Sequence record: OP991903.1
Strand: one strand, 5' to 3'
DNA: 64,000 bases
The translations under genes were made by a program, and so were the position numbers. Shown piece by piece: positions 8,937 through 64,000 of the stretch. Positions within the stretch are counted from its first letter, which is position 1, and each line of letters opens with the position of its first letter. The notes under the pieces are model-generated. The model did no database searches, was not told the origin of the DNA, and saw nothing but the letters and a program-made list of their open reading frames with translations.

Positions 8937-9354
8937 TAAAGAGTGCATCATGATAACGGTGAACTGTGTTGGAGCGATGGGGGCGGGGATTGCGAAGGAT
9001 TGCCGTGATAACTACCCCGAGCTTTACGAGAAGTACCGTAAGTGGTGCCGTGCCGGGATGTTCAAGATTGGGATGTTGTACAGTGAGCGGATGTCTGACG
9101 GAAAAATCATCCTGTTGTTCCCCACTAAAGTAGACTGGAAAGCCCCGTCTAAGATGGAGTGGGTTGAACAGGGACTGATTAAGCTCAGAGACACGTATGA
9201 CCAGCGTGGGCTCTTCGACATCGCGATGACGATGCCCGGGTGTGGAAATGGGTGGTTAAAGCATTGGGAGGTTTACCCGATGATACAGCGCATTCTAGGC
9301 CCTACTGACTTAGAGATTGATGTCCACCACCCCTACGAGGTGGATGGGGAATAA
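8890..9354 (+). CDS. macrodomain (Appr-1''-p / DarG-type ADP-ribosyl hydrolase) protein
   Basis: TVNCVGAMGAGIA, LLFPTKVDWK, MPGCGNG are DarG-class macrodomain motifs; AAGGAG RBS, GTG start. Confidence 0.88.
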   Translation: MAIIRKLKNQNIWDTDKECIMITVNCVGAMGAGIAKDCRDNYPELYEKYRKWCRAGMFKIGMLYSERMSDGKIILLFPTKVDWKAPSKMEWVEQGLIKLRDTYDQRGLFDIAMTMPGCGNGWLKHWEVYPMIQRILGPTDLEIDVHHPYEVDGE

Positions 9355-9392: not shown

Positions 9393-10034
9393 TTACAGTT
9401 TAACGACCCGTAGAGACTTCAAGTATCCCGTGAAACGGTTAACCAGTCCGTGAGACGTCCCCAGCATCAGGTACGAATCACCCCCAGTACGGAATCTGGC
9501 AGCGACGGCCTGGTTACTGTTTTGATTGTTGGAAACGGTAATGTTTGCGCTGTCCTCTTTTACCGTTAGCTTCAACATCTGGTTATTGGCACTACCATAA
9601 CCGTAAGTGCGTTGATACGCGCCCGCGTCAGTGGTCTGGAAGACCTGGATGGGTTGGCTGAGTTGGTTGTGCAGTAACTCCAGCCCTTTCTTGATGTTGT
9701 TGGCAGCCGGGTAGTCACCCGTAGCGAACGTGCACATGAACCCACTGCCAACCAACGCTAACTCTATTGTCAGCTCGTAGTTACTGCCCGCCAAATCCAA
9801 CACCGGTGACAGGTTCTGAAAATACGCGTACCCATCGAAGTAGTAACACTTCCCATACGTGGGGTCGTTCACTACCCCGTCCCCATTCGCACCACCTGTC
9901 ACCACGCCCCGGGTCAGCGGAATCCCCAACGGACCCGAATCAATGATGGTCTTGTCGCCTACTGTCGCGTTAACAAAGTTGATGTCGAGTAGAATCTTCC
10001 CGGATTTCCTTCCCATCAAGTTACTTTCAAACAT
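9393..10034 (-). CDS. putative virion (tail-associated) protein, LamG/concanavalin-like; paralog of next gene
   Basis: N-tag MFESNLMGRKSGK; shares GDGVVNDPTYGKCY.F.G..YF, F.TGDY and FTG..KSL with 10052..10684; beta-rich. Confidence 0.6.
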   Translation of the reverse strand: MFESNLMGRKSGKILLDINFVNATVGDKTIIDSGPLGIPLTRGVVTGGANGDGVVNDPTYGKCYYFDGYAYFQNLSPVLDLAGSNYELTIELALVGSGFMCTFATGDYPAANNIKKGLELLHNQLSQPIQVFQTTDAGAYQRTYGYGSANNQMLKLTVKEDSANITVSNNQNSNQAVAARFRTGGDSYLMLGTSHGLVNRFTGYLKSLRVVKL

Positions 10035-10051
10035 GACTACCTCACTTTACC

Positions 10052-10684
10052 CTAGAGGAGTTCAATCTTTAAGGACTTCATTAACCCCGTGAAGCAGTAA
10101 GCCGGGTTCTGCGCCACGCCGATACGGAAGAAGGTTTCTCCCAGGGTGTTGAAATCAGGGTAGGAGTTCTTCTGCCCCGTCCGCGGACTCTCAATCGTTA
10201 CACCGGTTGACCGCCGAGTAATGATGATGGTCTCCATCACCGTCGGACGCGTACCGTTTAAGAGCACCCGCTGGTATTGACCATTGCACATGAAGTACTG
10301 TACCCACTGACTGGCGTAGTTGTTGATGCTCAACGACGAGCCTATATTGGCGGTAGGGTTATAATCCCCTGTCCCAAAGACGGCCTCGGCCTTGGCGGCC
10401 AAACTTTGAAAGACCAGTGTGATACGGTACTCTTTGTTCCAGATACCCGGTCTTCCCGTGGGGTCCTCGAAATACGTTATACCGTTAAACCGATAACACT
10501 TCCCGTAGGTTGGGTCATCGACAACACCGTCGGTTCCGTTAACAGTCCCGCTTCCTTGTTTCCGTCCAAAGGTAAAATTTCCCGATTTGCTAGTGAGGAC
10601 CTGACTGCCTACTACGGCGTCCTCAAAGTCAATGTCGACAACAACCTTAGAGCGTTTTTGTCCACCTAATAAATTCGCTTCCAT
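10052..10684 (-). CDS. putative virion (tail-associated) protein, LamG/concanavalin-like paralog
   Basis: Likely start MEANLLGGQKRSK (ATG 10684, GGGG RBS); DGVVDDPTYGKCYRFNGITYF. Confidence 0.6.
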   Translation of the reverse strand: MEANLLGGQKRSKVVVDIDFEDAVVGSQVLTSKSGNFTFGRKQGSGTVNGTDGVVDDPTYGKCYRFNGITYFEDPTGRPGIWNKEYRITLVFQSLAAKAEAVFGTGDYNPTANIGSSLSINNYASQWVQYFMCNGQYQRVLLNGTRPTVMETIIITRRSTGVTIESPRTGQKNSYPDFNTLGETFFRIGVAQNPAYCFTGLMKSLKIELL

Positions 10685-56395: not shown

Positions 56396-57244
56396 ATGAC
56401 TGCCGATGGCTACTACAATCTACCCACGTGGCAACTCTTTTTCCGCCAGTTGAAGTTGGATAACCCCAACATTAACTTCACCGCTGAAGAAGTGAAGCTG
56501 ATTGATATCACACCGTTCATTACCTCCGATACGGAAGTGAATACCAAGTCCACTTTGATTGGTGTTCCGGAGTACGGGCGTGAAGGTACCTGGGAACTGA
56601 CCCACAACCGTCCTGACATCGGCGTCATCTTTGCCGACGTTGAGGTTTGGGTGGCACCGCAAGGGCAAACCCAGAAGTCTGAACTGTTATCGGACATCAA
56701 TGCACGCTTTGGGTTCCAGTTAACGGCCGCTGACATCTACGACGGTTACCTGAATCCGCAGCTGGTGCCATACGCCGTTGACCTCGTGGTGCGTGAGAAC
56801 AACCCGGCGTTTACCGGGAAGCTCACCGTACATATCGGTCGCCGTAAGCTCCAGTTGGAAACCGTGATGACAAACCATCAGCTGGCCGGGATTAACTACC
56901 CAACCATGCAGACGGTGAAGATTCAAGGTCCGTTGTTCCTGTACGGGTTCGACTTCTCGTACGCCTACGATGAACTGCAAGCCTTGTTCCCACAAGGACA
57001 GGAAATCATCGGGGAAACGCTGGACTCCTTTAACCGCAAGGTGGAAACGCCATGGGTTAATGAGGTAACACCACAGGACTGGAACCTGCGTGGTTCACTG
57101 GTAACGTGGAACGGTCTGATTAGCGGAGCCCCGGTTCCAGCGAACAGTACCTGGTACACGCACTGTGTAGTTATCAGTCTTGACGAGAACATGTGCGACA
57201 ACGTTGCCGGGTATCTGGTGTTGCATTACAACTTGCCGTCATAG
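56396..57244 (+). CDS. virion structural protein
   Basis: 282 aa, GGAG RBS, baseplate operon. Confidence 0.55.
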   Translation: MTADGYYNLPTWQLFFRQLKLDNPNINFTAEEVKLIDITPFITSDTEVNTKSTLIGVPEYGREGTWELTHNRPDIGVIFADVEVWVAPQGQTQKSELLSDINARFGFQLTAADIYDGYLNPQLVPYAVDLVVRENNPAFTGKLTVHIGRRKLQLETVMTNHQLAGINYPTMQTVKIQGPLFLYGFDFSYAYDELQALFPQGQEIIGETLDSFNRKVETPWVNEVTPQDWNLRGSLVTWNGLISGAPVPANSTWYTHCVVISLDENMCDNVAGYLVLHYNLPS

Positions 57245-57253
57245 CCCTAAGAG

Positions 57254-57285
57254 CCGGTGGGAGAGCATCCCACCGGTTTCTTATG
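57254..57285 (+). terminator. hairpin followed by TTTCTTATG
   Basis: CCGGTGGGA-GAGCA-TCCCACCGG; TATG at 57282-57285 may be a late promoter. Confidence 0.7.
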
Positions 57286-57322
57286 TGTCTACCCTTTAAT
57301 AAGCAACCCGGAGAATACTCTG

Positions 57323-58252
57323 ATGGCCGTTAAGATTAGTCCGGTAACCCGGACGGCGATTGGCAGCTTGCTGCAAGATAACTTGCTGGCTGGGAAACAA
57401 CAACCCCTGTTGGCCGGTACGACCCTCAACGAATTGCTCCAGATTCAGCAGAACGCGATTCTGGGCCAGGGTGAAAATCCTCGTTTTGGTTACTACGCGA
57501 TTGGTAACAAAGGTCACACCTCGAGCATTGTCGACGGGACCGATACCATCATCGACCTGTACAAACATGCGCCCGAAGATTGTGCGTGCTGGAATCATAT
57601 CCCGTTTGTGCTGCGCGAAGAAGCCAACGACCTGTCGGCTGACCTGCGTCTGAACTACGGCCTGCGCCGCAGCGAGCAGCACAACGGCAAGAACTACTTC
57701 GCGTATTACCTGAAGCGTATTGACCTTTCCGGTACATCCGCCAAAGTCATGCACACCACGGTAGTCAACGGCGTTAGCAACACCGAAGAGTACGAGTTCA
57801 GTAATGCGAACCTGAACCCGGTGCGCCCGGTGGTGTTACCGGATGAAGCCACGACGACGGCTAACGACTTCCTGTCCACTACCATGCCAGTGACCATCGC
57901 CTTCGACCTGTTCGACGTGAACGAGCTGTTCAACGTGGCGGCGGTGCTGTGGAACAATGAGAAGCGCGCTATCATCTCTGAGCTGGCGTTCTGCTCCGGT
58001 GTTGACCGTAACATCCAAAGCGTTGGGGCCGGTGGTGCTGCCATCAACTTTAAAGAAGTCATCGGTTGCCAGGTGATTACGCACGTGACCACCTACAAAC
58101 AGCTGTCCATCGACAACGAAGGCTTCAACATCAACATGGAAGTCGGTGCGACCGAACCGATGTTGACGGGTTCTGCGCTGTCCGCTGGAGCCAACAACGA
58201 CCTGTTAGCGATGGCACGTTCTTCCCTGCTCTCTAACATCACCGTCAGCTAA
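57323..58252 (+). CDS. putative baseplate protein (phiKZ gp139-like)
   Basis: ATG 57323 with GGAG RBS; YYAIGNKGH, HIPFVLR, YFAYYLKRID, AIISELAFCSGVD. Confidence 0.55.
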   Translation: MAVKISPVTRTAIGSLLQDNLLAGKQQPLLAGTTLNELLQIQQNAILGQGENPRFGYYAIGNKGHTSSIVDGTDTIIDLYKHAPEDCACWNHIPFVLREEANDLSADLRLNYGLRRSEQHNGKNYFAYYLKRIDLSGTSAKVMHTTVVNGVSNTEEYEFSNANLNPVRPVVLPDEATTTANDFLSTTMPVTIAFDLFDVNELFNVAAVLWNNEKRAIISELAFCSGVDRNIQSVGAGGAAINFKEVIGCQVITHVTTYKQLSIDNEGFNINMEVGATEPMLTGSALSAGANNDLLAMARSSLLSNITVS

Positions 58253-58264
58253 TAAGGGGGCGTG

Positions 58265-58864
58265 ATGGATAACCTGACGCAAACGGGGGTTATTCGTGAC
58301 GAGCTGGTCCGGTTGATTAGGGTGGCAAATCCTGAGGGGCCTAACTGGGCTCCCTCTGAGTTGTCTATCGAGTACAAGTCTTACGATTCCCAGACGGACA
58401 ACAACACCATCTGGGTCCGTGACTTGACCAACCGGTTCTTCAGCTACCGCGATTTCGAATACCACCGGGTGGAATTCTCGCTTTTGTTCAAAGGGATTAC
58501 TCCCATGGTGCAGGTTCGTGAAGGGGAAACGGTTGCGGCCGTCCTCAAGCGTTTCTGTATCCAATACGGGTTACCGCAGTACCTGGCTACCGACTTTGAA
58601 GACTCCTCGCTTTTTACGCAAACCGTCCATCTTATTGATGGAAGAGGGAACCTCACGGCGATATTCGCCGATGACTCGCTCGGTTGGCACGGGATTCTTG
58701 ACATCGGTCTCTGGGACGGCGTTCCGCACCTGAACACTGCGATTAAGACCACCGACCTCGATGGCTTTACGCCGCCGAACAACGACCTCAGTGAAGCGAT
58801 TATCTACCCTACGCTCGCTGGCTACCGTTACCCCAGCCTCCCAGACGATGAGCAACCCGAATGA
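58265..58864 (+). CDS. putative virion/tail-associated protein
   Basis: ~200 aa, AAGGGG RBS; domain similar in style to 56396..57244 (YHRVEFSLLF...RFCIQYGL). Confidence 0.5.
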   Translation: MDNLTQTGVIRDELVRLIRVANPEGPNWAPSELSIEYKSYDSQTDNNTIWVRDLTNRFFSYRDFEYHRVEFSLLFKGITPMVQVREGETVAAVLKRFCIQYGLPQYLATDFEDSSLFTQTVHLIDGRGNLTAIFADDSLGWHGILDIGLWDGVPHLNTAIKTTDLDGFTPPNNDLSEAIIYPTLAGYRYPSLPDDEQPE

Positions 58865-59211
58865 AACCACCAATTCAAATCTTGGCAAAAATTGCTGAGC
58901 AGGCCCATGCCGTGAACAACGTCTGGACCAAAGAAGTCGGTAACGAAACCCGTCCGGAATGGAACACCCTGTCACAGGACGATAAAGAGCATTACATCCA
59001 CGCGGTAGCCAACGCCATTGATTCCAAACTCTCCAGTCCAGCGGATGCCCACAAACAGTGGTCGACCTGGATGATGGAACAAGGGTGGGAACACGGTGAC
59101 TACGACAGAGAAGGGAAGAAACACCCTAACCTCGTGCCGTACGACCAGCTGCCTGAAACCGAAAAGGTAAAAGACATCCTTTTCATTGCGGTATGTAAAC
59201 CGTTCTACTAA
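58861..59211 (+). CDS. RyR-domain protein
   Basis: HKQWSTWMMEQGWEHGDYDREGKKHPNLVPYDQLPETEKVKD matches the RyR repeat consensus. Confidence 0.8.
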   Translation: MKPPIQILAKIAEQAHAVNNVWTKEVGNETRPEWNTLSQDDKEHYIHAVANAIDSKLSSPADAHKQWSTWMMEQGWEHGDYDREGKKHPNLVPYDQLPETEKVKDILFIAVCKPFY

Positions 59212-59216
59212 AAAGA

Positions 59217-59247
59217 CGGGGGCACAGTCCCCCGCTTTTATTTTTTG
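59217..59247 (+). terminator. intrinsic terminator
   Basis: CGGGGG-CACAGT-CCCCCG + T-tract. Confidence 0.75.
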
Positions 59248-59262
59248 TTCAGGAGGTTGCCC

Positions 59263-59823
59263 GTGGACGGGAATATTTTACGTGTTGTCGGGATTGACCC
59301 CGGTAGCCAGTCACTGGGGTTCTCGTACTTTGAGCACAACATCGAAACCAACGACCCCCGGTTAAAGTTTGCCCGTACCTTCCATGCGGAATCGGTGATG
59401 AAGTCGAATCCCCGGTTTGATATCTTTGGCGTGCGTGGGAAACGGTTGCGGTTGTGCGGTGAGTTCATCACGCGTCAATTGACCGAACTGAATCCCCACA
59501 TCGTCTGTTGTGAAGATGCGTACCTGGGGCGCTTCCCTGCGGCGTTTCGTTCACTGGTCGAAGGGGTGGTCTGTATTCAGAACGCCGTGTACGCCTGGAA
59601 TGAAGAGACCCGTTTGTGGTTAGTGGACCCGCCGACGGCGAAGATTGCTGTCGGTGCACCGGGACGCGGTGGTGGTAAAGATGCGGTACGGGATGCCCTC
59701 TTGAAGAACAAGGACTTCGCCTTTGAGGTAGAAGTGGACTTGTTAGACGAACACAGCGTTGACTCCGTTGCCATCGGGTGGTGGGGCCTCAAGCGCTGGA
59801 TAGAAGAAAACCAACCGGAGTAA
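59263..59823 (+). CDS. ruvC: RuvC-like Holliday junction resolvase
   Basis: AGGAGG RBS then GTG 59263; VVGIDPG, VCCEDAY, AKIAVGAPGRGGGK, DEHSVDSVAIG. Confidence 0.85.
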   Translation: MDGNILRVVGIDPGSQSLGFSYFEHNIETNDPRLKFARTFHAESVMKSNPRFDIFGVRGKRLRLCGEFITRQLTELNPHIVCCEDAYLGRFPAAFRSLVEGVVCIQNAVYAWNEETRLWLVDPPTAKIAVGAPGRGGGKDAVRDALLKNKDFAFEVEVDLLDEHSVDSVAIGWWGLKRWIEENQPE

Positions 59824-59826
59824 CCC

Positions 59827-60576
59827 GTGGATAAATTGATTCCTTTCTTCCTGGACATTGAAGGTCTTGATGGTGCAGGAAAAACAACGTTGCGCAATCT
59901 GATTAGTATTGCTTTACAAGACCAGGGCTACGATGTCGTTCTGGCTCGTGAGCCCGGCGGTACGCCGTTAGCGGAACAGTTCCGTGACCTGGTCAAGTAC
60001 GGGCAGTCTAAGTACAATGAACCGATGACGGAACAGACTCGCCTCTGTCTCCTGAACGCCAGTCGCAGTCAACACCTGGAACACGTTATTCGTCCACACC
60101 TCGCCAAAGGCTCTGTAGTGCTCTGTGACCGTTTCTTCTGGTCAACCCTGGCCTACACAGACCCAGAGACGTACGAGCTCGCACAACAGCTCCACGTGCT
60201 GTTAGGGAATGACCTGGAACCGGACCTGATTATTTATCTGGACCTGGACCACAAAACGTCCCTGGCTCGGCGTAAAGCGCAGGAAGATGCACACTGGGAA
60301 GAATTGTTCCCCGGCGTACCGCGACGGGATGAACCCTGTGACATCGAAGCCAAGCTCGATACCCGCTACGAATCCGCTCGCTTAGTCTACCAAAATCTTG
60401 CTGCTAACGCTCCTAATGCTGTGACATTGGATGCACGTCAACCGATGAGCACAGTCTTTGCTAAAGCAATGGAAGCGATTAGCAAGGTGCAAGCGAGGCT
60501 GAACGAAAATGAAAGTAAGCGAGCTGTTACAAGTGAAACCGACGACGCTGGGCGTCTCGGGGATTCAGCTCAGTAA
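59827..60576 (+). CDS. tmk: thymidylate kinase
   Basis: P-loop IEGLDGAGKTT, REPGGTPLAE, LCDRF, PDLIIYLD. Confidence 0.92.
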   Translation: MDKLIPFFLDIEGLDGAGKTTLRNLISIALQDQGYDVVLAREPGGTPLAEQFRDLVKYGQSKYNEPMTEQTRLCLLNASRSQHLEHVIRPHLAKGSVVLCDRFFWSTLAYTDPETYELAQQLHVLLGNDLEPDLIIYLDLDHKTSLARRKAQEDAHWEELFPGVPRRDEPCDIEAKLDTRYESARLVYQNLAANAPNAVTLDARQPMSTVFAKAMEAISKVQARLNENESKRAVTSETDDAGRLGDSAQ

Positions 60577-61078
60577 CGGCAAGAGCTTAGTAGAAACCCT
60601 CCAGGGATACGAAGAGCTTGCCGTCGCGTGTAGCGACTGCTTAATGTTGCAACACGTGATTGATTCTGTCGCTCTTTTGACCCCAGAGCACCAGGAGGAA
60701 TTCATGAGTCTGGACGTAGATGATAAAACGGTGGAGAAAACACCCAACGCGGTGCCGCCGTTAACCGTGTCCCCTGAATACCAACGGGAAGCGAAAGTCC
60801 GGGCCGTGATTGGTGTGACCATGTGTGTGGTTCTCGCCCTCATGGCGCTGATGTTCGCGGCCACTATCTGTTGGGTGTCCATCGACCGCAAAGAGTTCCC
60901 GGACTGGTTCCTGGTTCTGGTGGTGGTTGGCCCTGTGATGGGGATTGGTTGGTTGTTCATGGGCTTAATCAACAAAGAGCGCCGTGACCTGATGTCGGTG
61001 GTGTTAGGTGACAGCCAGGCAGGTGGTGGATTTGTTGGGGCCTTCTTTGACTTCCTGGCCACACGACGAAAAGTCTAA
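60509..61078 (+). CDS. membrane protein with two transmembrane helices (possible holin-like)
   Basis: VIGVTMCVVLALMALMFAATICWV and WFLVLVVVGPVMGIGWLFMGL; function unassigned. Confidence 0.65.
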   Translation: MKVSELLQVKPTTLGVSGIQLSNGKSLVETLQGYEELAVACSDCLMLQHVIDSVALLTPEHQEEFMSLDVDDKTVEKTPNAVPPLTVSPEYQREAKVRAVIGVTMCVVLALMALMFAATICWVSIDRKEFPDWFLVLVVVGPVMGIGWLFMGLINKERRDLMSVVLGDSQAGGGFVGAFFDFLATRRKV

Positions 61079-61086
61079 CGCTAACA

Positions 61087-61129
61087 ATGGCGGCGTTACC
61101 TTCGGGTAGCGCTGTCATTCTTTTATGCT
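61087..61129 (+). terminator. terminator hairpin + TTTTATGC
   Basis: AATGGCGGCGTTACC-TTCG-GGTAGCGCTGTCATT (15 bp with GU). Confidence 0.8.
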
Positions 61130-61140
61130 TCGAGGTACGT

Positions 61141-61920
61141 ATGCTAGAAATGGTGATGGGTGGGAAGAAGAAAATCGAGGTTCTTCCTAGCCAGGCGATG
61201 TGGGTTGCCGCCGGAACCTTTAACTGGGTTGTACCCGACGGCGTAAAGAGTATCAGCGCAGTGGCTATTGGTGCAGGGGCACATGGAGCGTACGGAACCT
61301 TTGACGGCGTGACCACGACCGTTGGTGGGGTCGGTGGCTCCCTGCGCTACAACAATGCGATTTCAGTTACCCCCGGTGAAACACTGACCATCATTGTCGG
61401 GGCGGGAACCAGTAACCTTGGGTATACAACCGGTGGGATTGGTTGGGTAGACGGTAAGGACACCAGTATCCTCCGCGGTTCCACCGTGCTTTTGAAAGCG
61501 TCTGGTGGTCGGGCAACCAAAGATGCAATGGTGGCCAACTCTCTGGGAGCCGGTGGCGGGGATGGTGGTGTAAGGATTGCAACCAGTAGTACCCAAGGTG
61601 CGCCGGGGTCCGGTACGGGCGGGTACTACGGAGACGGCGGTGGTACTACAGCAGGGGCAACTCCGACCGACACGACCGCGGGTAAGGCTGGTACCATGAC
61701 CAGTAACACCGTCAACGGCGTGAACATCAGTGGCGGGAACAACGGGGTGGGCTCACAGCTGTATGGGGCATTGGTCAAAGGTACTCGCTGTGGTGTATCC
61801 GCAGGGGTGGCTCGTCGTTCGAGTGACAACGCCCGTGCGTATGCCGGGGCAGGTGTGGGTGGCGTAAGAATCATGTGGGGTGACACGCGCGCATTCCCTG
61901 AAAATGCAGACGACGTATAA
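61141..61920 (+). CDS. glycine-rich tail-fibre-associated protein
   Basis: GAGG RBS, start MLEMVMGGKKK; GTFNWVVPDGVKSISAVAIGAG and GGVRIMWG bracket a Gly-rich domain typical of phage tail proteins. Confidence 0.65.
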   Translation: MLEMVMGGKKKIEVLPSQAMWVAAGTFNWVVPDGVKSISAVAIGAGAHGAYGTFDGVTTTVGGVGGSLRYNNAISVTPGETLTIIVGAGTSNLGYTTGGIGWVDGKDTSILRGSTVLLKASGGRATKDAMVANSLGAGGGDGGVRIATSSTQGAPGSGTGGYYGDGGGTTAGATPTDTTAGKAGTMTSNTVNGVNISGGNNGVGSQLYGALVKGTRCGVSAGVARRSSDNARAYAGAGVGGVRIMWGDTRAFPENADDV

Positions 61921-61929
61921 GGGGGAGGT

Positions 61930-62700
61930 ATGATTGAAGCGCTCTTGATGGGAAGAAGGAAACCGTCCGCAGCGTGGGCATTGGGCACTGAGATGTTGGC
62001 GTGGGACTCGAGTATCTTCAGGGACACTGGTTTTGTCGATTACACCGGAAAAACTTTGAAGGTCACCAGTGTTATCCCAACCGCCGGTGCAGCAGTCCCC
62101 CCACTATTACCTTCATTGGGTGCCGAAAGTTTTCAATACGGAAAGGGTGTGGAAATGGGACATGGTTCTGTCGCCACTCCACCCGGGACTATTACACCAG
62201 GATTTGTGACCAGTGCCTGGACGGTGGATTATTGGAAACGGGACTTGGACGTCCTTTCCCCGGTTAACAAACACCAACCGTTAGTCCCCCTGATTGTTTA
62301 TCCCGACCTCACGGTAAACGGCTACTGGACCAACCGGTTACAGTGTACCTTGGGGTACGCCAACACCGCCCGCTTGGTTGGGATTTGGAACAATCAGGCT
62401 GCGCCCAGAATCAACGGAATGAAACAGAACGATGCATTCTACGGCACCGACTGGAAACACATTGCAGTCATGTACTCTGGCGGCAAGGTTTACTTCTTCT
62501 GTAACGGGGTGTTGATTGACACGCTGACGTACACGATTCTGACTCCTACGGGTAACCAACAGGTTGGTATCATGTCGCAGTCTGTGGCGAACAGTCCCGA
62601 TGTCAGGGGGATGGTAGAACGTTACCGACTGCGTGCCGGGGCACTGTTCCCGACCACCGGGTTCACTGCGGACACGGCAACCCTTTACCCCAGCGCGTAA
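61930..62700 (+). CDS. LamG/concanavalin-like tail-associated protein
   Basis: MIEALLMGRRK; WTVDYW, WKHIAVMYSGGKVYFFCNGVL, GMVERYRL. Confidence 0.65.
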   Translation: MIEALLMGRRKPSAAWALGTEMLAWDSSIFRDTGFVDYTGKTLKVTSVIPTAGAAVPPLLPSLGAESFQYGKGVEMGHGSVATPPGTITPGFVTSAWTVDYWKRDLDVLSPVNKHQPLVPLIVYPDLTVNGYWTNRLQCTLGYANTARLVGIWNNQAAPRINGMKQNDAFYGTDWKHIAVMYSGGKVYFFCNGVLIDTLTYTILTPTGNQQVGIMSQSVANSPDVRGMVERYRLRAGALFPTTGFTADTATLYPSA

Positions 62701-62713
62701 CGAGGATGAAACC

Positions 62714-63463
62714 ATGCAAGAACTTTTGTTAGCTGGGAAGAAAAGCGGTAAATACCCCGGGGCGACCACACCCATTGGACGATACGTCGACCCCAACAAC
62801 AGTGCGCGTTTTACGGAGTTCTACGGAGAGGTGGCGAACAGCGCTATGCCCTCAGTAGCCGCATTGCGAGCACTCGGGGGTAATGTGGGGTCGGCTATCA
62901 ACGCAACCATCCCGTGGTTGAAATTCGGGATTGACGGTCGCCTCCTCTATACACCGAAGAAACCTATCACCTCTGCTTACGGGTGGAGTGCACTTTACTC
63001 TTCGGGTTTAGTCTGGGGGTCAAACGACAACGGGCTGTTCAACAACGGAACACCGCGTAACCAGTTACGGACCATCGTCTTGAACGGGGTCACGTATAAG
63101 GTCATGTTGTGGAACGTCCTGCAACCCGGTCTGGGTAAGCTCCCTTATAACGGGAACTACGCCAACCGAACGGAGATGCTGGGGTCGGATTGGATGCGAT
63201 TGATTCCCAACATCGTTTCCACTACTGTCTCTGCGCAGGAAGGCCCGAAGTGGGAAACATATGACCCGGTAAACGACCTGATGCTGATTGGTGGTACCAC
63301 TACACCCGGTGGATTACAGTTGTGTCGCGAGCAGGTCAATGCCAACGACAGCCTGGCCCGTGCCGCGACCGTCTGGAGTAGCATCTGGACAGTGGGTGCG
63401 CCTGTTATCACTGACGTTCAGGCCTATTTAGGTTGGCGTCCTGTTTTGGAAATCATTCCTTAA
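62714..63463 (+). CDS. phiKZ gp131-family virion/tail protein
   Basis: Start MQELLLAGKKSGK; FYGEV, WLKFGIDGRLLYTPKKP, SDWMRL, GWRPVLE motifs of the gp131-like paralog family. Confidence 0.7.
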   Translation: MQELLLAGKKSGKYPGATTPIGRYVDPNNSARFTEFYGEVANSAMPSVAALRALGGNVGSAINATIPWLKFGIDGRLLYTPKKPITSAYGWSALYSSGLVWGSNDNGLFNNGTPRNQLRTIVLNGVTYKVMLWNVLQPGLGKLPYNGNYANRTEMLGSDWMRLIPNIVSTTVSAQEGPKWETYDPVNDLMLIGGTTTPGGLQLCREQVNANDSLARAATVWSSIWTVGAPVITDVQAYLGWRPVLEIIP

Positions 63464-63473
63464 GGGGTAGACC

Positions 63474-64000
63474 ATGTTAGAAGCCATACTCCTCGGTAAG
63501 AAGAACGGATTTGTTCCGGGTGAGCAGCCCTATATCGGTTATAATTTCGAGAAAGGACTATCGACCGGCAAACAGGTTATCAGTCTCACTAACCTGATTG
63601 CTAGTGATGTGGTCACACCACCGGTAGCCCTTTCGGGGTACAGTAAAGCACTGTTCACGGGAACCAAACAGTTCCCCATCATCCCGTTGACGTCAATGGA
63701 TGTAGGGACCGGGGATTTCACGATTGAATTTCCTTTCTATTGTACCCAGACCAGTAATGGTTATACGACTTTGATGTACCAACGCCCGAATACATCCAGT
63801 TGGGGCGGATTAATCATTCGCTTTGGGGATAACGGGTACGGTAACCGCTTACAGGTTTCGACCCAACCTGATATAGGTAACTCGAACTACTCAACCAGTA
63901 CAACGCGAGCAACCGGGACCAATCGCTGGATACATTTCGTCATGCAGCGACGTAACGGGAAAATCTCCGTCTACCTGAATGGGGTGAAACAAGGATTGGC
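63474..64000 (+). CDS. LamG/concanavalin-like tail-associated protein (3'-truncated)
   Basis: GGGG RBS, MLEAILLGKKNG; GTGDFTIEF, WIHFVMQRRNGKISVYLNGV; no stop before the window end, so absent from the ORF track. Confidence 0.7.
   Translation, partial: MLEAILLGKKNGFVPGEQPYIGYNFEKGLSTGKQVISLTNLIASDVVTPPVALSGYSKALFTGTKQFPIIPLTSMDVGTGDFTIEFPFYCTQTSNGYTTLMYQRPNTSSWGGLIIRFGDNGYGNRLQVSTQPDIGNSNYSTSTTRATGTNRWIHFVMQRRNGKISVYLNGVKQGL

Follow-up and report, generated by a model that had tools for sequence, protein, structure and literature searches.

Secondary receptor-binding proteins (RBPs) of the K1-5/SP6 and Klebsiella phage groups begin with a short, hydrophobic, conserved N-terminal peptide (7-11 residues in some groups) that differs between phage groups (PMC6872550), and the interaction between this conserved peptide and a branching domain has since been validated experimentally (PMC13352976). 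Here we describe a comparable tag, about ten residues long, at the N-termini of otherwise different proteins of Erwinia phage vB_Ea277G (genus Iapetusvirus; genome 218,506 bp). Six of these proteins are encoded in bases 124001-188000 of sequence record OP991903.1, the 64,000-nucleotide (nt) stretch that we analysed and call the window; they are named T1-T6, and L-numbers denote the compared loci, including metagenomic jumbo-phage loci. vB_Ea277G is a phiKZ-like jumbo phage whose genome codes for a tubulin-like protein (PhuZ) and has the same arrangement of genes as phiKZ in the neighbourhood of the major head, portal and gp130 genes, and nearly all genes of its record are annotated 'hypothetical'. 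In the best reading of our results, the tag would be a docking peptide in small lectin-like modules of large myophages, like the peptides of podophage secondary RBPs (K1-5/SP6/KP34-type).

The branched RBP systems, comprising the K1E/K1-5/SP6 tailspikes on adapter gp37 and the Klebsiella KP32, KP34, Menlow and PhiK64-1 groups, resemble this locus in that a short N-terminal peptide runs across different bodies and is the sole similarity between the proteins; in vB_Ea277G, six strict and two looser tags precede at least four body families. The resemblance has limits, however. Branched RBPs, which occur in podophages and some myophages, are trimeric beta-helix tailspikes or depolymerases of large size, whereas the proteins described here carry lectin-like or novel domains and are 210-260 amino acids (aa) long. 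The socket of the branched RBPs is a T4gp10-like domain, whereas scans of the neighbouring fibre and baseplate proteins gave no such label here. Moreover, unlike the branched RBPs, the tagged proteins number up to eight per genome, occur in jumbo myophages and Certrevirus, and share an invariant Glu3.

Three further systems bear comparison. The DUF7941 filament proteins (Goslar gp22/gp23, along with versions fused to carbohydrate-binding domains; preprint 10.64898/2026.04.21.720040) form a modular, virion-associated system that presents such domains on the outside of the phage, as is proposed for the tag; DUF7941 genes also flank the tagged cassette, and DUF7941-type N-termini and the tag share the slot before the same domain (the T3 core, see below) in different phages. 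In contrast to these proteins, the tagged proteins have no DUF7941 domain, and the tag also occurs in Certrevirus. The chimallivirus proteins phiKZ gp131-gp135 (PMC13250141) likewise join different C-terminal parts to a common N-terminal attachment region and are encoded beside the gp130 gene, but that region is a folded domain plus a long helix, forming a hetero-hexameric fibre base under gp130, rather than a peptide of about ten residues, and these proteins have no tag. Finally, T4-type capsid targeting sequences (PMC5694885) are short N-terminal propeptides, common to different internal head proteins, that direct them to one assembly. Those sequences terminate at a site for the prohead protease and are cut off, and the internal proteins that bear them are injected, whereas the bodies here resemble external binders; the tag is also free of the AXE/SXE cleavage motif (the SPN3US and phiKZ motifs given in PMC5694885), its only Glu standing at position 3 with Met two residues before it.

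All six tags that a preliminary description of the window had pointed out are present, each at a gene start (Table 1), and a Shine-Dalgarno-like sequence lies 5-10 nt 5' of every one. T2, T4 and T5 have an in-frame stop 1-4 codons upstream, and their starts are therefore unambiguous. At T1, T3 and T6 the frame stays open upstream, and the tag start is supported in each case: the upstream extension of T1 is made of a 15-bp terminator hairpin, orthologues of T3 start at the tag, and in the L008 orthologue of T6 the tag Met is the first ATG. Across window positions 57000-64000, megablast gave 100% identity to vB_Ea277G and 98.6% to PhiEaH1. In the record of PhiEaH1, the T1 and T3 orthologues (277 and 276 aa) start at upstream codons (window 61087-61140 and 62633-62713) and the tag is therefore hidden inside them, while the vB_Ea277G record has the tag starts.

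We also carried out the genome-wide motif scan that had been proposed, taking the rest of the genome in overlapping pieces, each scanned in six frames. Across the 218.5 kb, the strict pattern occurred at only these six N-termini, and at the same six when the initial Met was made optional, compared with an expectation of 0.003 such N-termini among 249 genes (from the genome amino-acid composition over 214 long open reading frames, ORFs). A looser core (Met1, Glu3 and three hydrophobic positions) added two annotated N-termini at genome 61597 and 64393 (minus strand), in a tail-fibre paralog array outside the window, so that vB_Ea277G has eight tagged proteins. N-termini fitting the loose pattern at genome 7999, 110105 and 204406 were chance-like or ambiguous. 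An apparent seventh tag on a 2217-aa gp181-like giant protein (genome 17444-17459, minus strand, from an upstream TTG) was rejected, the extra residues being the translated Shine-Dalgarno region before the annotated ATG. A similar look-alike stands upstream of phiKZ gp181 (L013 39323-39335).

Behind the tags lie unrelated bodies. T1 belongs to Pfam Gly_rich_2 (PF21722, 38.5 bits against a cutoff of 24.3; phrog_4474), while T2 (28.6 bits; phrog_3545) and T4 (33.9 bits) belong to Laminin_G_3 (PF13385, gathering threshold 27.6); T3, T5 and T6 received no Pfam assignment. None of T1-T6 matched DUF7941 (E up to 0.1), although the two neighbouring DUF7941 genes listed in Table 1 do. The six proteins fall into four different PHROG families, and after removal of the first 16 residues BLASTP similarity was left only between T5 and T6. 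In profile-profile comparison (hhalign), the T5/T6 and LamG families aligned over residues 1-12 and nothing more, the T3 and LamG families aligned weakly over the tag region alone, and the T3 and T5/T6 families gave no meaningful alignment. The bodies had been said to represent at least three unrelated folds; by BLASTP, Pfam, PHROG and hhalign there are at least four families without detectable mutual similarity. These LamG, Gly_rich_2, T3-core and phrog_6011 proteins are not trimeric beta-helix tailspikes or depolymerases. Nothing significant came from searching the PDB with the sequences of T1, T3 and T4, or with profiles built on the T3 and T5/T6 family alignments. The N-terminal tag is thus a genuine module that is not a chance match and does not depend on the fold that follows it.

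AlphaFold models of two of the proteins place the tag apart from the folded body. For T4, the mean predicted local distance difference test score (pLDDT) was 85.5, with tag residues 1-11 below 50 (mean 44) and a short helix at residues 3-6; for T3, pLDDT was 83.5 (predicted template-modelling score 0.85), with a mean of 52 over residues 1-10 and a short helix at residues 2-6. The models accordingly put the tag outside the fold, exposed and flexible, as a two-turn helix of low confidence. A Foldseek search of the PDB with the T4 model retrieved lectin-like jelly-rolls (template-modelling score 0.5-0.6, 12-16% identity). The best of these neighbours were the lectin-like jelly-roll subdomains found in the binding regions of clostridial neurotoxins and in their non-toxic partners, the NTNH proteins, a modelled resemblance of generic fold class only that does not imply a toxin.

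Several measures indicate that the peptide itself is maintained. In a comparison of five tags, nucleotide identity was 0.56 at the first codon position, 0.63 at the second and 0.39 at the third, identical residue pairs shared the same codon in 19 of 40 cases, and the 30 nt upstream of the starts were mutually unrelated. The low third-position identity and the unrelated upstream DNA therefore point to selection on the peptide rather than on the bases. When 11 T4 orthologues were gathered by homology alone, all were tagged and Met1 and Glu3 were invariant; the mean share of the commonest residue was 0.64 in the tag core (positions 1-7), 0.38 in the linker and 0.60 in the body. The tag is thus conserved as strongly as the folded cores. 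In the LamG alignment it was the most conserved stretch, and a search for related loci that started from the tag confirmed only two loci.

The tag is widespread in large phages and has apparently gone undescribed so far. Ralstonia phage RsoM3USA has four consecutive tagged genes, and in Erwinia phage RAY a T4 orthologue (gp114) and a T1 homologue (gp130) have tags that lack the basic residues. T5 homologues with the tag occur in Ralstonia, Cronobacter CR3 and metagenomic phages, the Cronobacter protein being CR3 gp255, and a T1-like ORF of Enterobacter phage vB_ExiM_F1M1E is also tagged; CR3 and vB_ExiM_F1M1E belong to Certrevirus (Vequintavirinae), which is not a chimallivirus genus. The T1-like glycine-rich ORF of vB_ExiM_F1M1E (L025 9001-9690, record position 148224 onward) is uninterrupted and has a clear tag, while the record shows several tiny ORFs there. 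In metagenomic jumbo-phage loci there are between two and four tagged genes per locus, and the bodies behind these tags are T3-core, Kelch, LamG or unknown. Goslar gp021 (L024 14189-14971, minus strand), encoded beside the abundant DUF7941 proteins gp022/gp023, has a start that fits the loose core and is ambiguous as a tag.

We then compared 27 tags from seven genomes at nine variable positions, scored per position with BLOSUM62. Tags on different bodies within one genome scored 1.25 per position (33% identity, 44 pairs) versus 0.38 for tags on different bodies in different genomes (21% identity, 263 pairs), a difference reached by none of 10000 label permutations, and tags on homologous bodies in different genomes scored 0.37. 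Each genome has its own flavour: Gly plus two basic residues in vB_Ea277G, three Lys in RsoM3USA, and Ile2 in all four tags of L016. The tag therefore follows the genome and not the body, which is the pattern expected if all tags of a genome fit one genome-encoded partner.

T3 had been called gp131-like, which is incorrect: the T3-family profile aligned to gp131 with E 0.56 (hhalign), and the gp131 homolog of this phage is an 858-aa protein (genome 190147-192723, E 5e-38) just past the window end. The T3 core is instead the domain of SPN3US 'paralog family B', with a tblastn match (E 3e-13) to SPN3US gp145, which sits inside the gp138-gp154 array; this family was put in the head because members were detected in a tailless mutant (Thomas and co-workers, PMC5694885). 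Six paralogs are encoded in vB_Ea277G itself, in an array at genome 58447-64393 (minus strand). A profile search of 1.84 billion representatives yielded 2218 T3-core members (482 below 1e-30), in architectures ranging from a single domain up to eight copies per protein, and tblastn found the domain in 119 phage records, nearly all of phiKZ-related jumbo phages. The T3 model had no significant PDB neighbour by Foldseek, and in BFVD it matched solely chimallivirus 'virion structural protein' entries (PhiPA3, 201phi2-1, RSL2, Noxifer and EL). The domain family joins proteins that are named 'head', 'baseplate' or 'hypothetical' in different phages.

Among the best 148 of the 2218 T3-core representatives, at least 43 start with the tag (Met1 in 43, Glu3 in 41, Leu5 in 32 and Leu6 in 29 of these), and others start with an FN3-like domain (~75 residues) or an Mtd_N-like domain (~50 residues). 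SPN3US members start with a DUF7941-like N-terminus or an FN3-like domain. The array of vB_Ea277G runs tag, FN3, FN3, tag, FN3, FN3, and that of SPN3US (gp145-gp153) runs DUF7941-type, FN3, FN3 repeatedly; the tag therefore occupies the slot of a module known to serve assembly elsewhere. The array in vB_Ea277G comes after genes for a DUF7941 protein, a 1286-aa collagen/fibritin fibre and a DUF4376 protein. In many metagenomic T3-core members (e.g. P0059, P0080, P0098 and P0102), the first ~50 residues were likened to an Mtd-type N-terminal domain by eye, and such an Mtd-like module would be a fourth alternative N-terminal module for the T3 core. The top non-significant PDB matches of the T3 model include a Treponema variable protein.

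With intergenic distances of 9-13 nt and a strong terminator-like hairpin on either side, T1-T4 form a four-gene cassette (window 61086 to genome 188209). Upstream of it lie genes for the portal, a DUF7941 protein, a DUF7208 protein, a second DUF7941 protein, a RyR-domain protein, a RuvC-like protein, thymidylate kinase and a membrane protein (Table 1). Judged from conserved gene order, the DUF7208 protein is probably the counterpart of the baseplate spoke protein phiKZ gp139 / Goslar gp32. The small RyR-domain protein (58861-59211, plus strand), between the DUF7941 and RuvC-like genes, has an RyR gene at the same place in L022. Downstream, on the opposite strand, a 194-aa protein is followed by a 417-aa homolog of phiKZ gp130 (E 2e-32), beneath which the phiKZ fibres attach (PMC13250141). 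The interval that holds T1-T4 is empty in phiKp24, contains a DUF7941 gene and a tagged LamG orthologue of T4 in L022, and contains gp142 and the DUF7941 protein gp143 in phiKZ; with its differing content, it appears to be an insertion hot spot for accessory surface modules. The locus of the four RsoM3USA tagged genes is uninterrupted in vB_Ea277G, and the tagged genes behave as mobile cassettes. A macro-domain/phosphatase-like protein (phrog_335; window 8950-9354, plus strand) directly adjoins T5.

Table 1. Tagged genes and neighbouring features (window positions unless marked as genome positions)
Feature	Position	Strand	Description
T1	61141..61920	+	259 aa; tag 61141-61173 MLEMVMGGKKK (codons 1-11), then glycine-rich domain
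T2	61930..62700	+	256 aa; tag 61930-61962 MIEALLMGRRK, then concanavalin-A-like/LamG domain
T3	62714..63463	+	249 aa; tag 62714-62746 MQELLLAGKKS, flexible linker, ~220-aa T3-core domain
T4	63474..64000	+	235 aa, running past the window end (gene end genome 188181); tag 63474-63506 MLEAILLGKKN, then LamG jelly-roll
T5	9393..10034	-	213 aa; tag 10002-10034 MFESNLMGRKS; body phrog_6011
T6	10052..10684	-	210 aa; T5 paralog, 31% identity; tag 10652-10684 MEANLLGGQKR, one residue fewer before Glu
Terminator-like hairpin	61086..61119	+	15 pairs plus T-run, between membrane-protein gene and T1
Second hairpin, bidirectional	genome 188186-188209		just past the window end; closes the T1-T4 cassette
DUF7941 protein, full-length	56396..57244	+	282 aa; Pfam PF25613, E 7e-71; chimallivirus filament-forming family
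DUF7208 protein	57323..58252	+	Pfam PF23838, E 4e-104; same family in syntenic locus L022
Second, short DUF7941 protein	58265..58864	+	199 aa; Pfam PF25613, E 6e-14
Membrane protein	60533..61078	+	weak holin-like match; last conserved gene before T1-T4; synteny with phiKp24 gp053

Taken together, these results make it somewhat probable, in our judgement, that the tag acts as a short docking peptide at the N-terminus, by which small binding modules are mounted on a common virion site. It would form a two-turn hydrophobic helix bearing Met1, Glu3 and aliphatic residues at positions 5 and 6, followed by a flexible Gly/Lys/Ser-rich tether of 5-15 residues, and would hold small, probably monomeric modules of glycan-binding type (LamG, Gly-rich, T3-core and the T5/T6 body) non-covalently on one common socket. 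The likeliest site would be the peripheral baseplate and fibre network (the gp130 homolog, DUF7208 spokes and DUF7941 filaments), and the socket might be provided by the gp130 homolog, by the N-terminal domain of DUF7941 or by FN3-like N-domains. We infer that the tag binds a partner, that this partner is a virion protein, where it is positioned, and that the modules bind host surface glycans; it is the lectin-like folds alone that would suggest a link to host range. The proposal of a common anchor for interchangeable modules had been made from the window beforehand, and it is strengthened by a real, fold-independent tag on unrelated bodies, by its conservation, its predicted position outside the fold, its co-variation within genomes and the podophage precedent (PMC6872550). 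Two of the labels that came with the proposal fared less well: 'gp131-like' was wrong, and 'tail-type', which was read into the proteins and not observed, is uncertain since the T3 domain family has been put in the SPN3US head (PMC5694885).

DUF7941 deserves separate consideration as a socket. In the prediction given by the Goslar preprint (10.64898/2026.04.21.720040), the DUF7941 N-terminal domain contacts the next protomer by binding a disordered segment of it, and a link between tag and DUF7941 might be hypothesised. However, tblastn with the window DUF7941 protein returned no Certrevirus record, and the presence of the tag in Certrevirus together with this result argues against DUF7941 as the sole socket. 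Descent of the tag from the first DUF7941 helix, considered by eye only, was not retained, the tag being so short.

A number of observations weigh against a virion docking peptide at the baseplate. SPN3US proteomics puts the T3-core/DUF7941 family in the head (PMC5694885), so that the baseplate location is not secure. Lysate proteomics of RAY and Deimos-Minion and a localisation study of RAY do not report the tagged RAY proteins gp114 and gp130, and Pfam and PHROG scans (HMMER-level) labelled no T4gp10-like branching domain in the neighbouring fibre and baseplate proteins. T5/T6, RAY gp114 and gp130, and CR3 gp255 are encoded among non-structural genes (metabolic or of unknown function). In the four phages with the best structural or proteomic data, the stretches inspected showed no clear tag: 28 kb in SPN3US, 34 kb in phiKp24, 50 kb in Goslar and 95 kb in phiKZ. 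In addition, the tags used for the permutations were gathered by pattern search and read from tool outputs, and the set may be biased; co-variation within genomes would also be expected from any common trans-acting factor or from local gene conversion.

The alternative that survives best, although we regard it as improbable, is that a non-structural factor shared by all these proteins recognises the tag, which would govern folding, delivery or turnover and not attachment; the factor might be an assembly chaperone, a protein for tail-fibre assembly (e.g. DUF4376) or a protease. A tag flavour that is specific to the genome would be consistent with any shared trans-acting partner, fibre arrays with tagged genes also hold DUF4376 proteins, and the tag is exposed and flexible in the models. 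Against this, homologues show the tag replacing structural N-terminal modules (FN3-like and DUF7941-type) at the same array position, and CR3 gp255 and RAY gp114 and gp130 have no adjacent chaperone gene of that kind.

It is less probable still, and in our view clearly unlikely, that the modules dock onto the head or neck (capsid surface or collar) or onto free DUF7941-type filaments instead of the baseplate, in which case 'tail-type' would be wrong. Here, the position of T1-T4 between baseplate-spoke and gp130-like genes has to be set against that of a tagged LamG gene and a tagged T3-core gene in metagenomic L021, which directly follow the major capsid gene. All members of SPN3US paralog family B, including the T3-matched gp145, were found in the mutant that lacks tails and assigned to the head (PMC5694885). 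However, phiKZ gp127 is located at the outer baseplate, and Goslar DUF7941 protein, once purified, forms long filaments on its own (preprint 10.64898/2026.04.21.720040); filaments could therefore be co-purified with heads that have no tail.

The tags might, again with somewhat lower probability, bind one another, their short amphipathic helices bundling as a hetero-oligomer with no separate socket, similar to the six-helix bundle of the phiKZ fibre base. With only some five to six residues, the helix is too short to bundle stably, and the number of tags per genome seen so far varies (at least one in CR3, two in RAY, four in RsoM3USA and eight here), although tags are alike within a genome and the strict count here is six. 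In phiKZ, paralogs whose N-terminal parts are similar do assemble into hetero-hexameric fibre bases that contain a six-helix bundle (PMC13250141), but the proteins that form this bundle lack the tag.

We consider it highly unlikely that the tag is an amphipathic basic N-terminal segment that, while assembly proceeds, would target its proteins to the inner membrane or some other place in the cell: the pattern of this genome, in which Gly and two or three basic residues come after a hydrophobic stretch, would suit such a role, yet the basic residues are missing in many relatives (four L016 tags, L009 and RAY), the hydrophobic stretch is just four to five residues long, and the invariant Glu3 is left unexplained. 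Least credible is a nucleic-acid feature (a translational operator, promoter-proximal element or recombination junction serving cassette exchange) with the peptide as its by-product, for although tagged genes act as mobile cassettes at differing places in related genomes, third-codon identity is the lowest of the three, upstream regions are unrelated, the residue pattern is kept in distant phages, and ~33 nt at ~55% identity cannot sustain homologous exchange.

The docking-peptide reading may extend beyond vB_Ea277G. Two cryo-electron microscopy studies from 2026, of phiKZ and Goslar, leave the peripheral baseplate and fibres mostly unmodelled, and both indicate that the host-recognition layer consists of modular carbohydrate-binding proteins. 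We tentatively suggest, as a conjecture with a small chance of being right, that the tag may be one half of a plug-and-socket system widespread in large myophages, in which a conserved socket would take any protein that starts with the tag and both halves would co-evolve in each genome. If so, the unmodelled peripheral density of chimallivirus virions would represent a scaffold decorated in trans by changeable small glycan-binding modules. A sequence-defined tag would let the accessory surface modules of a jumbo phage be listed from its genome alone, and would help to assign unexplained density and to trace the movement of modules between phages.

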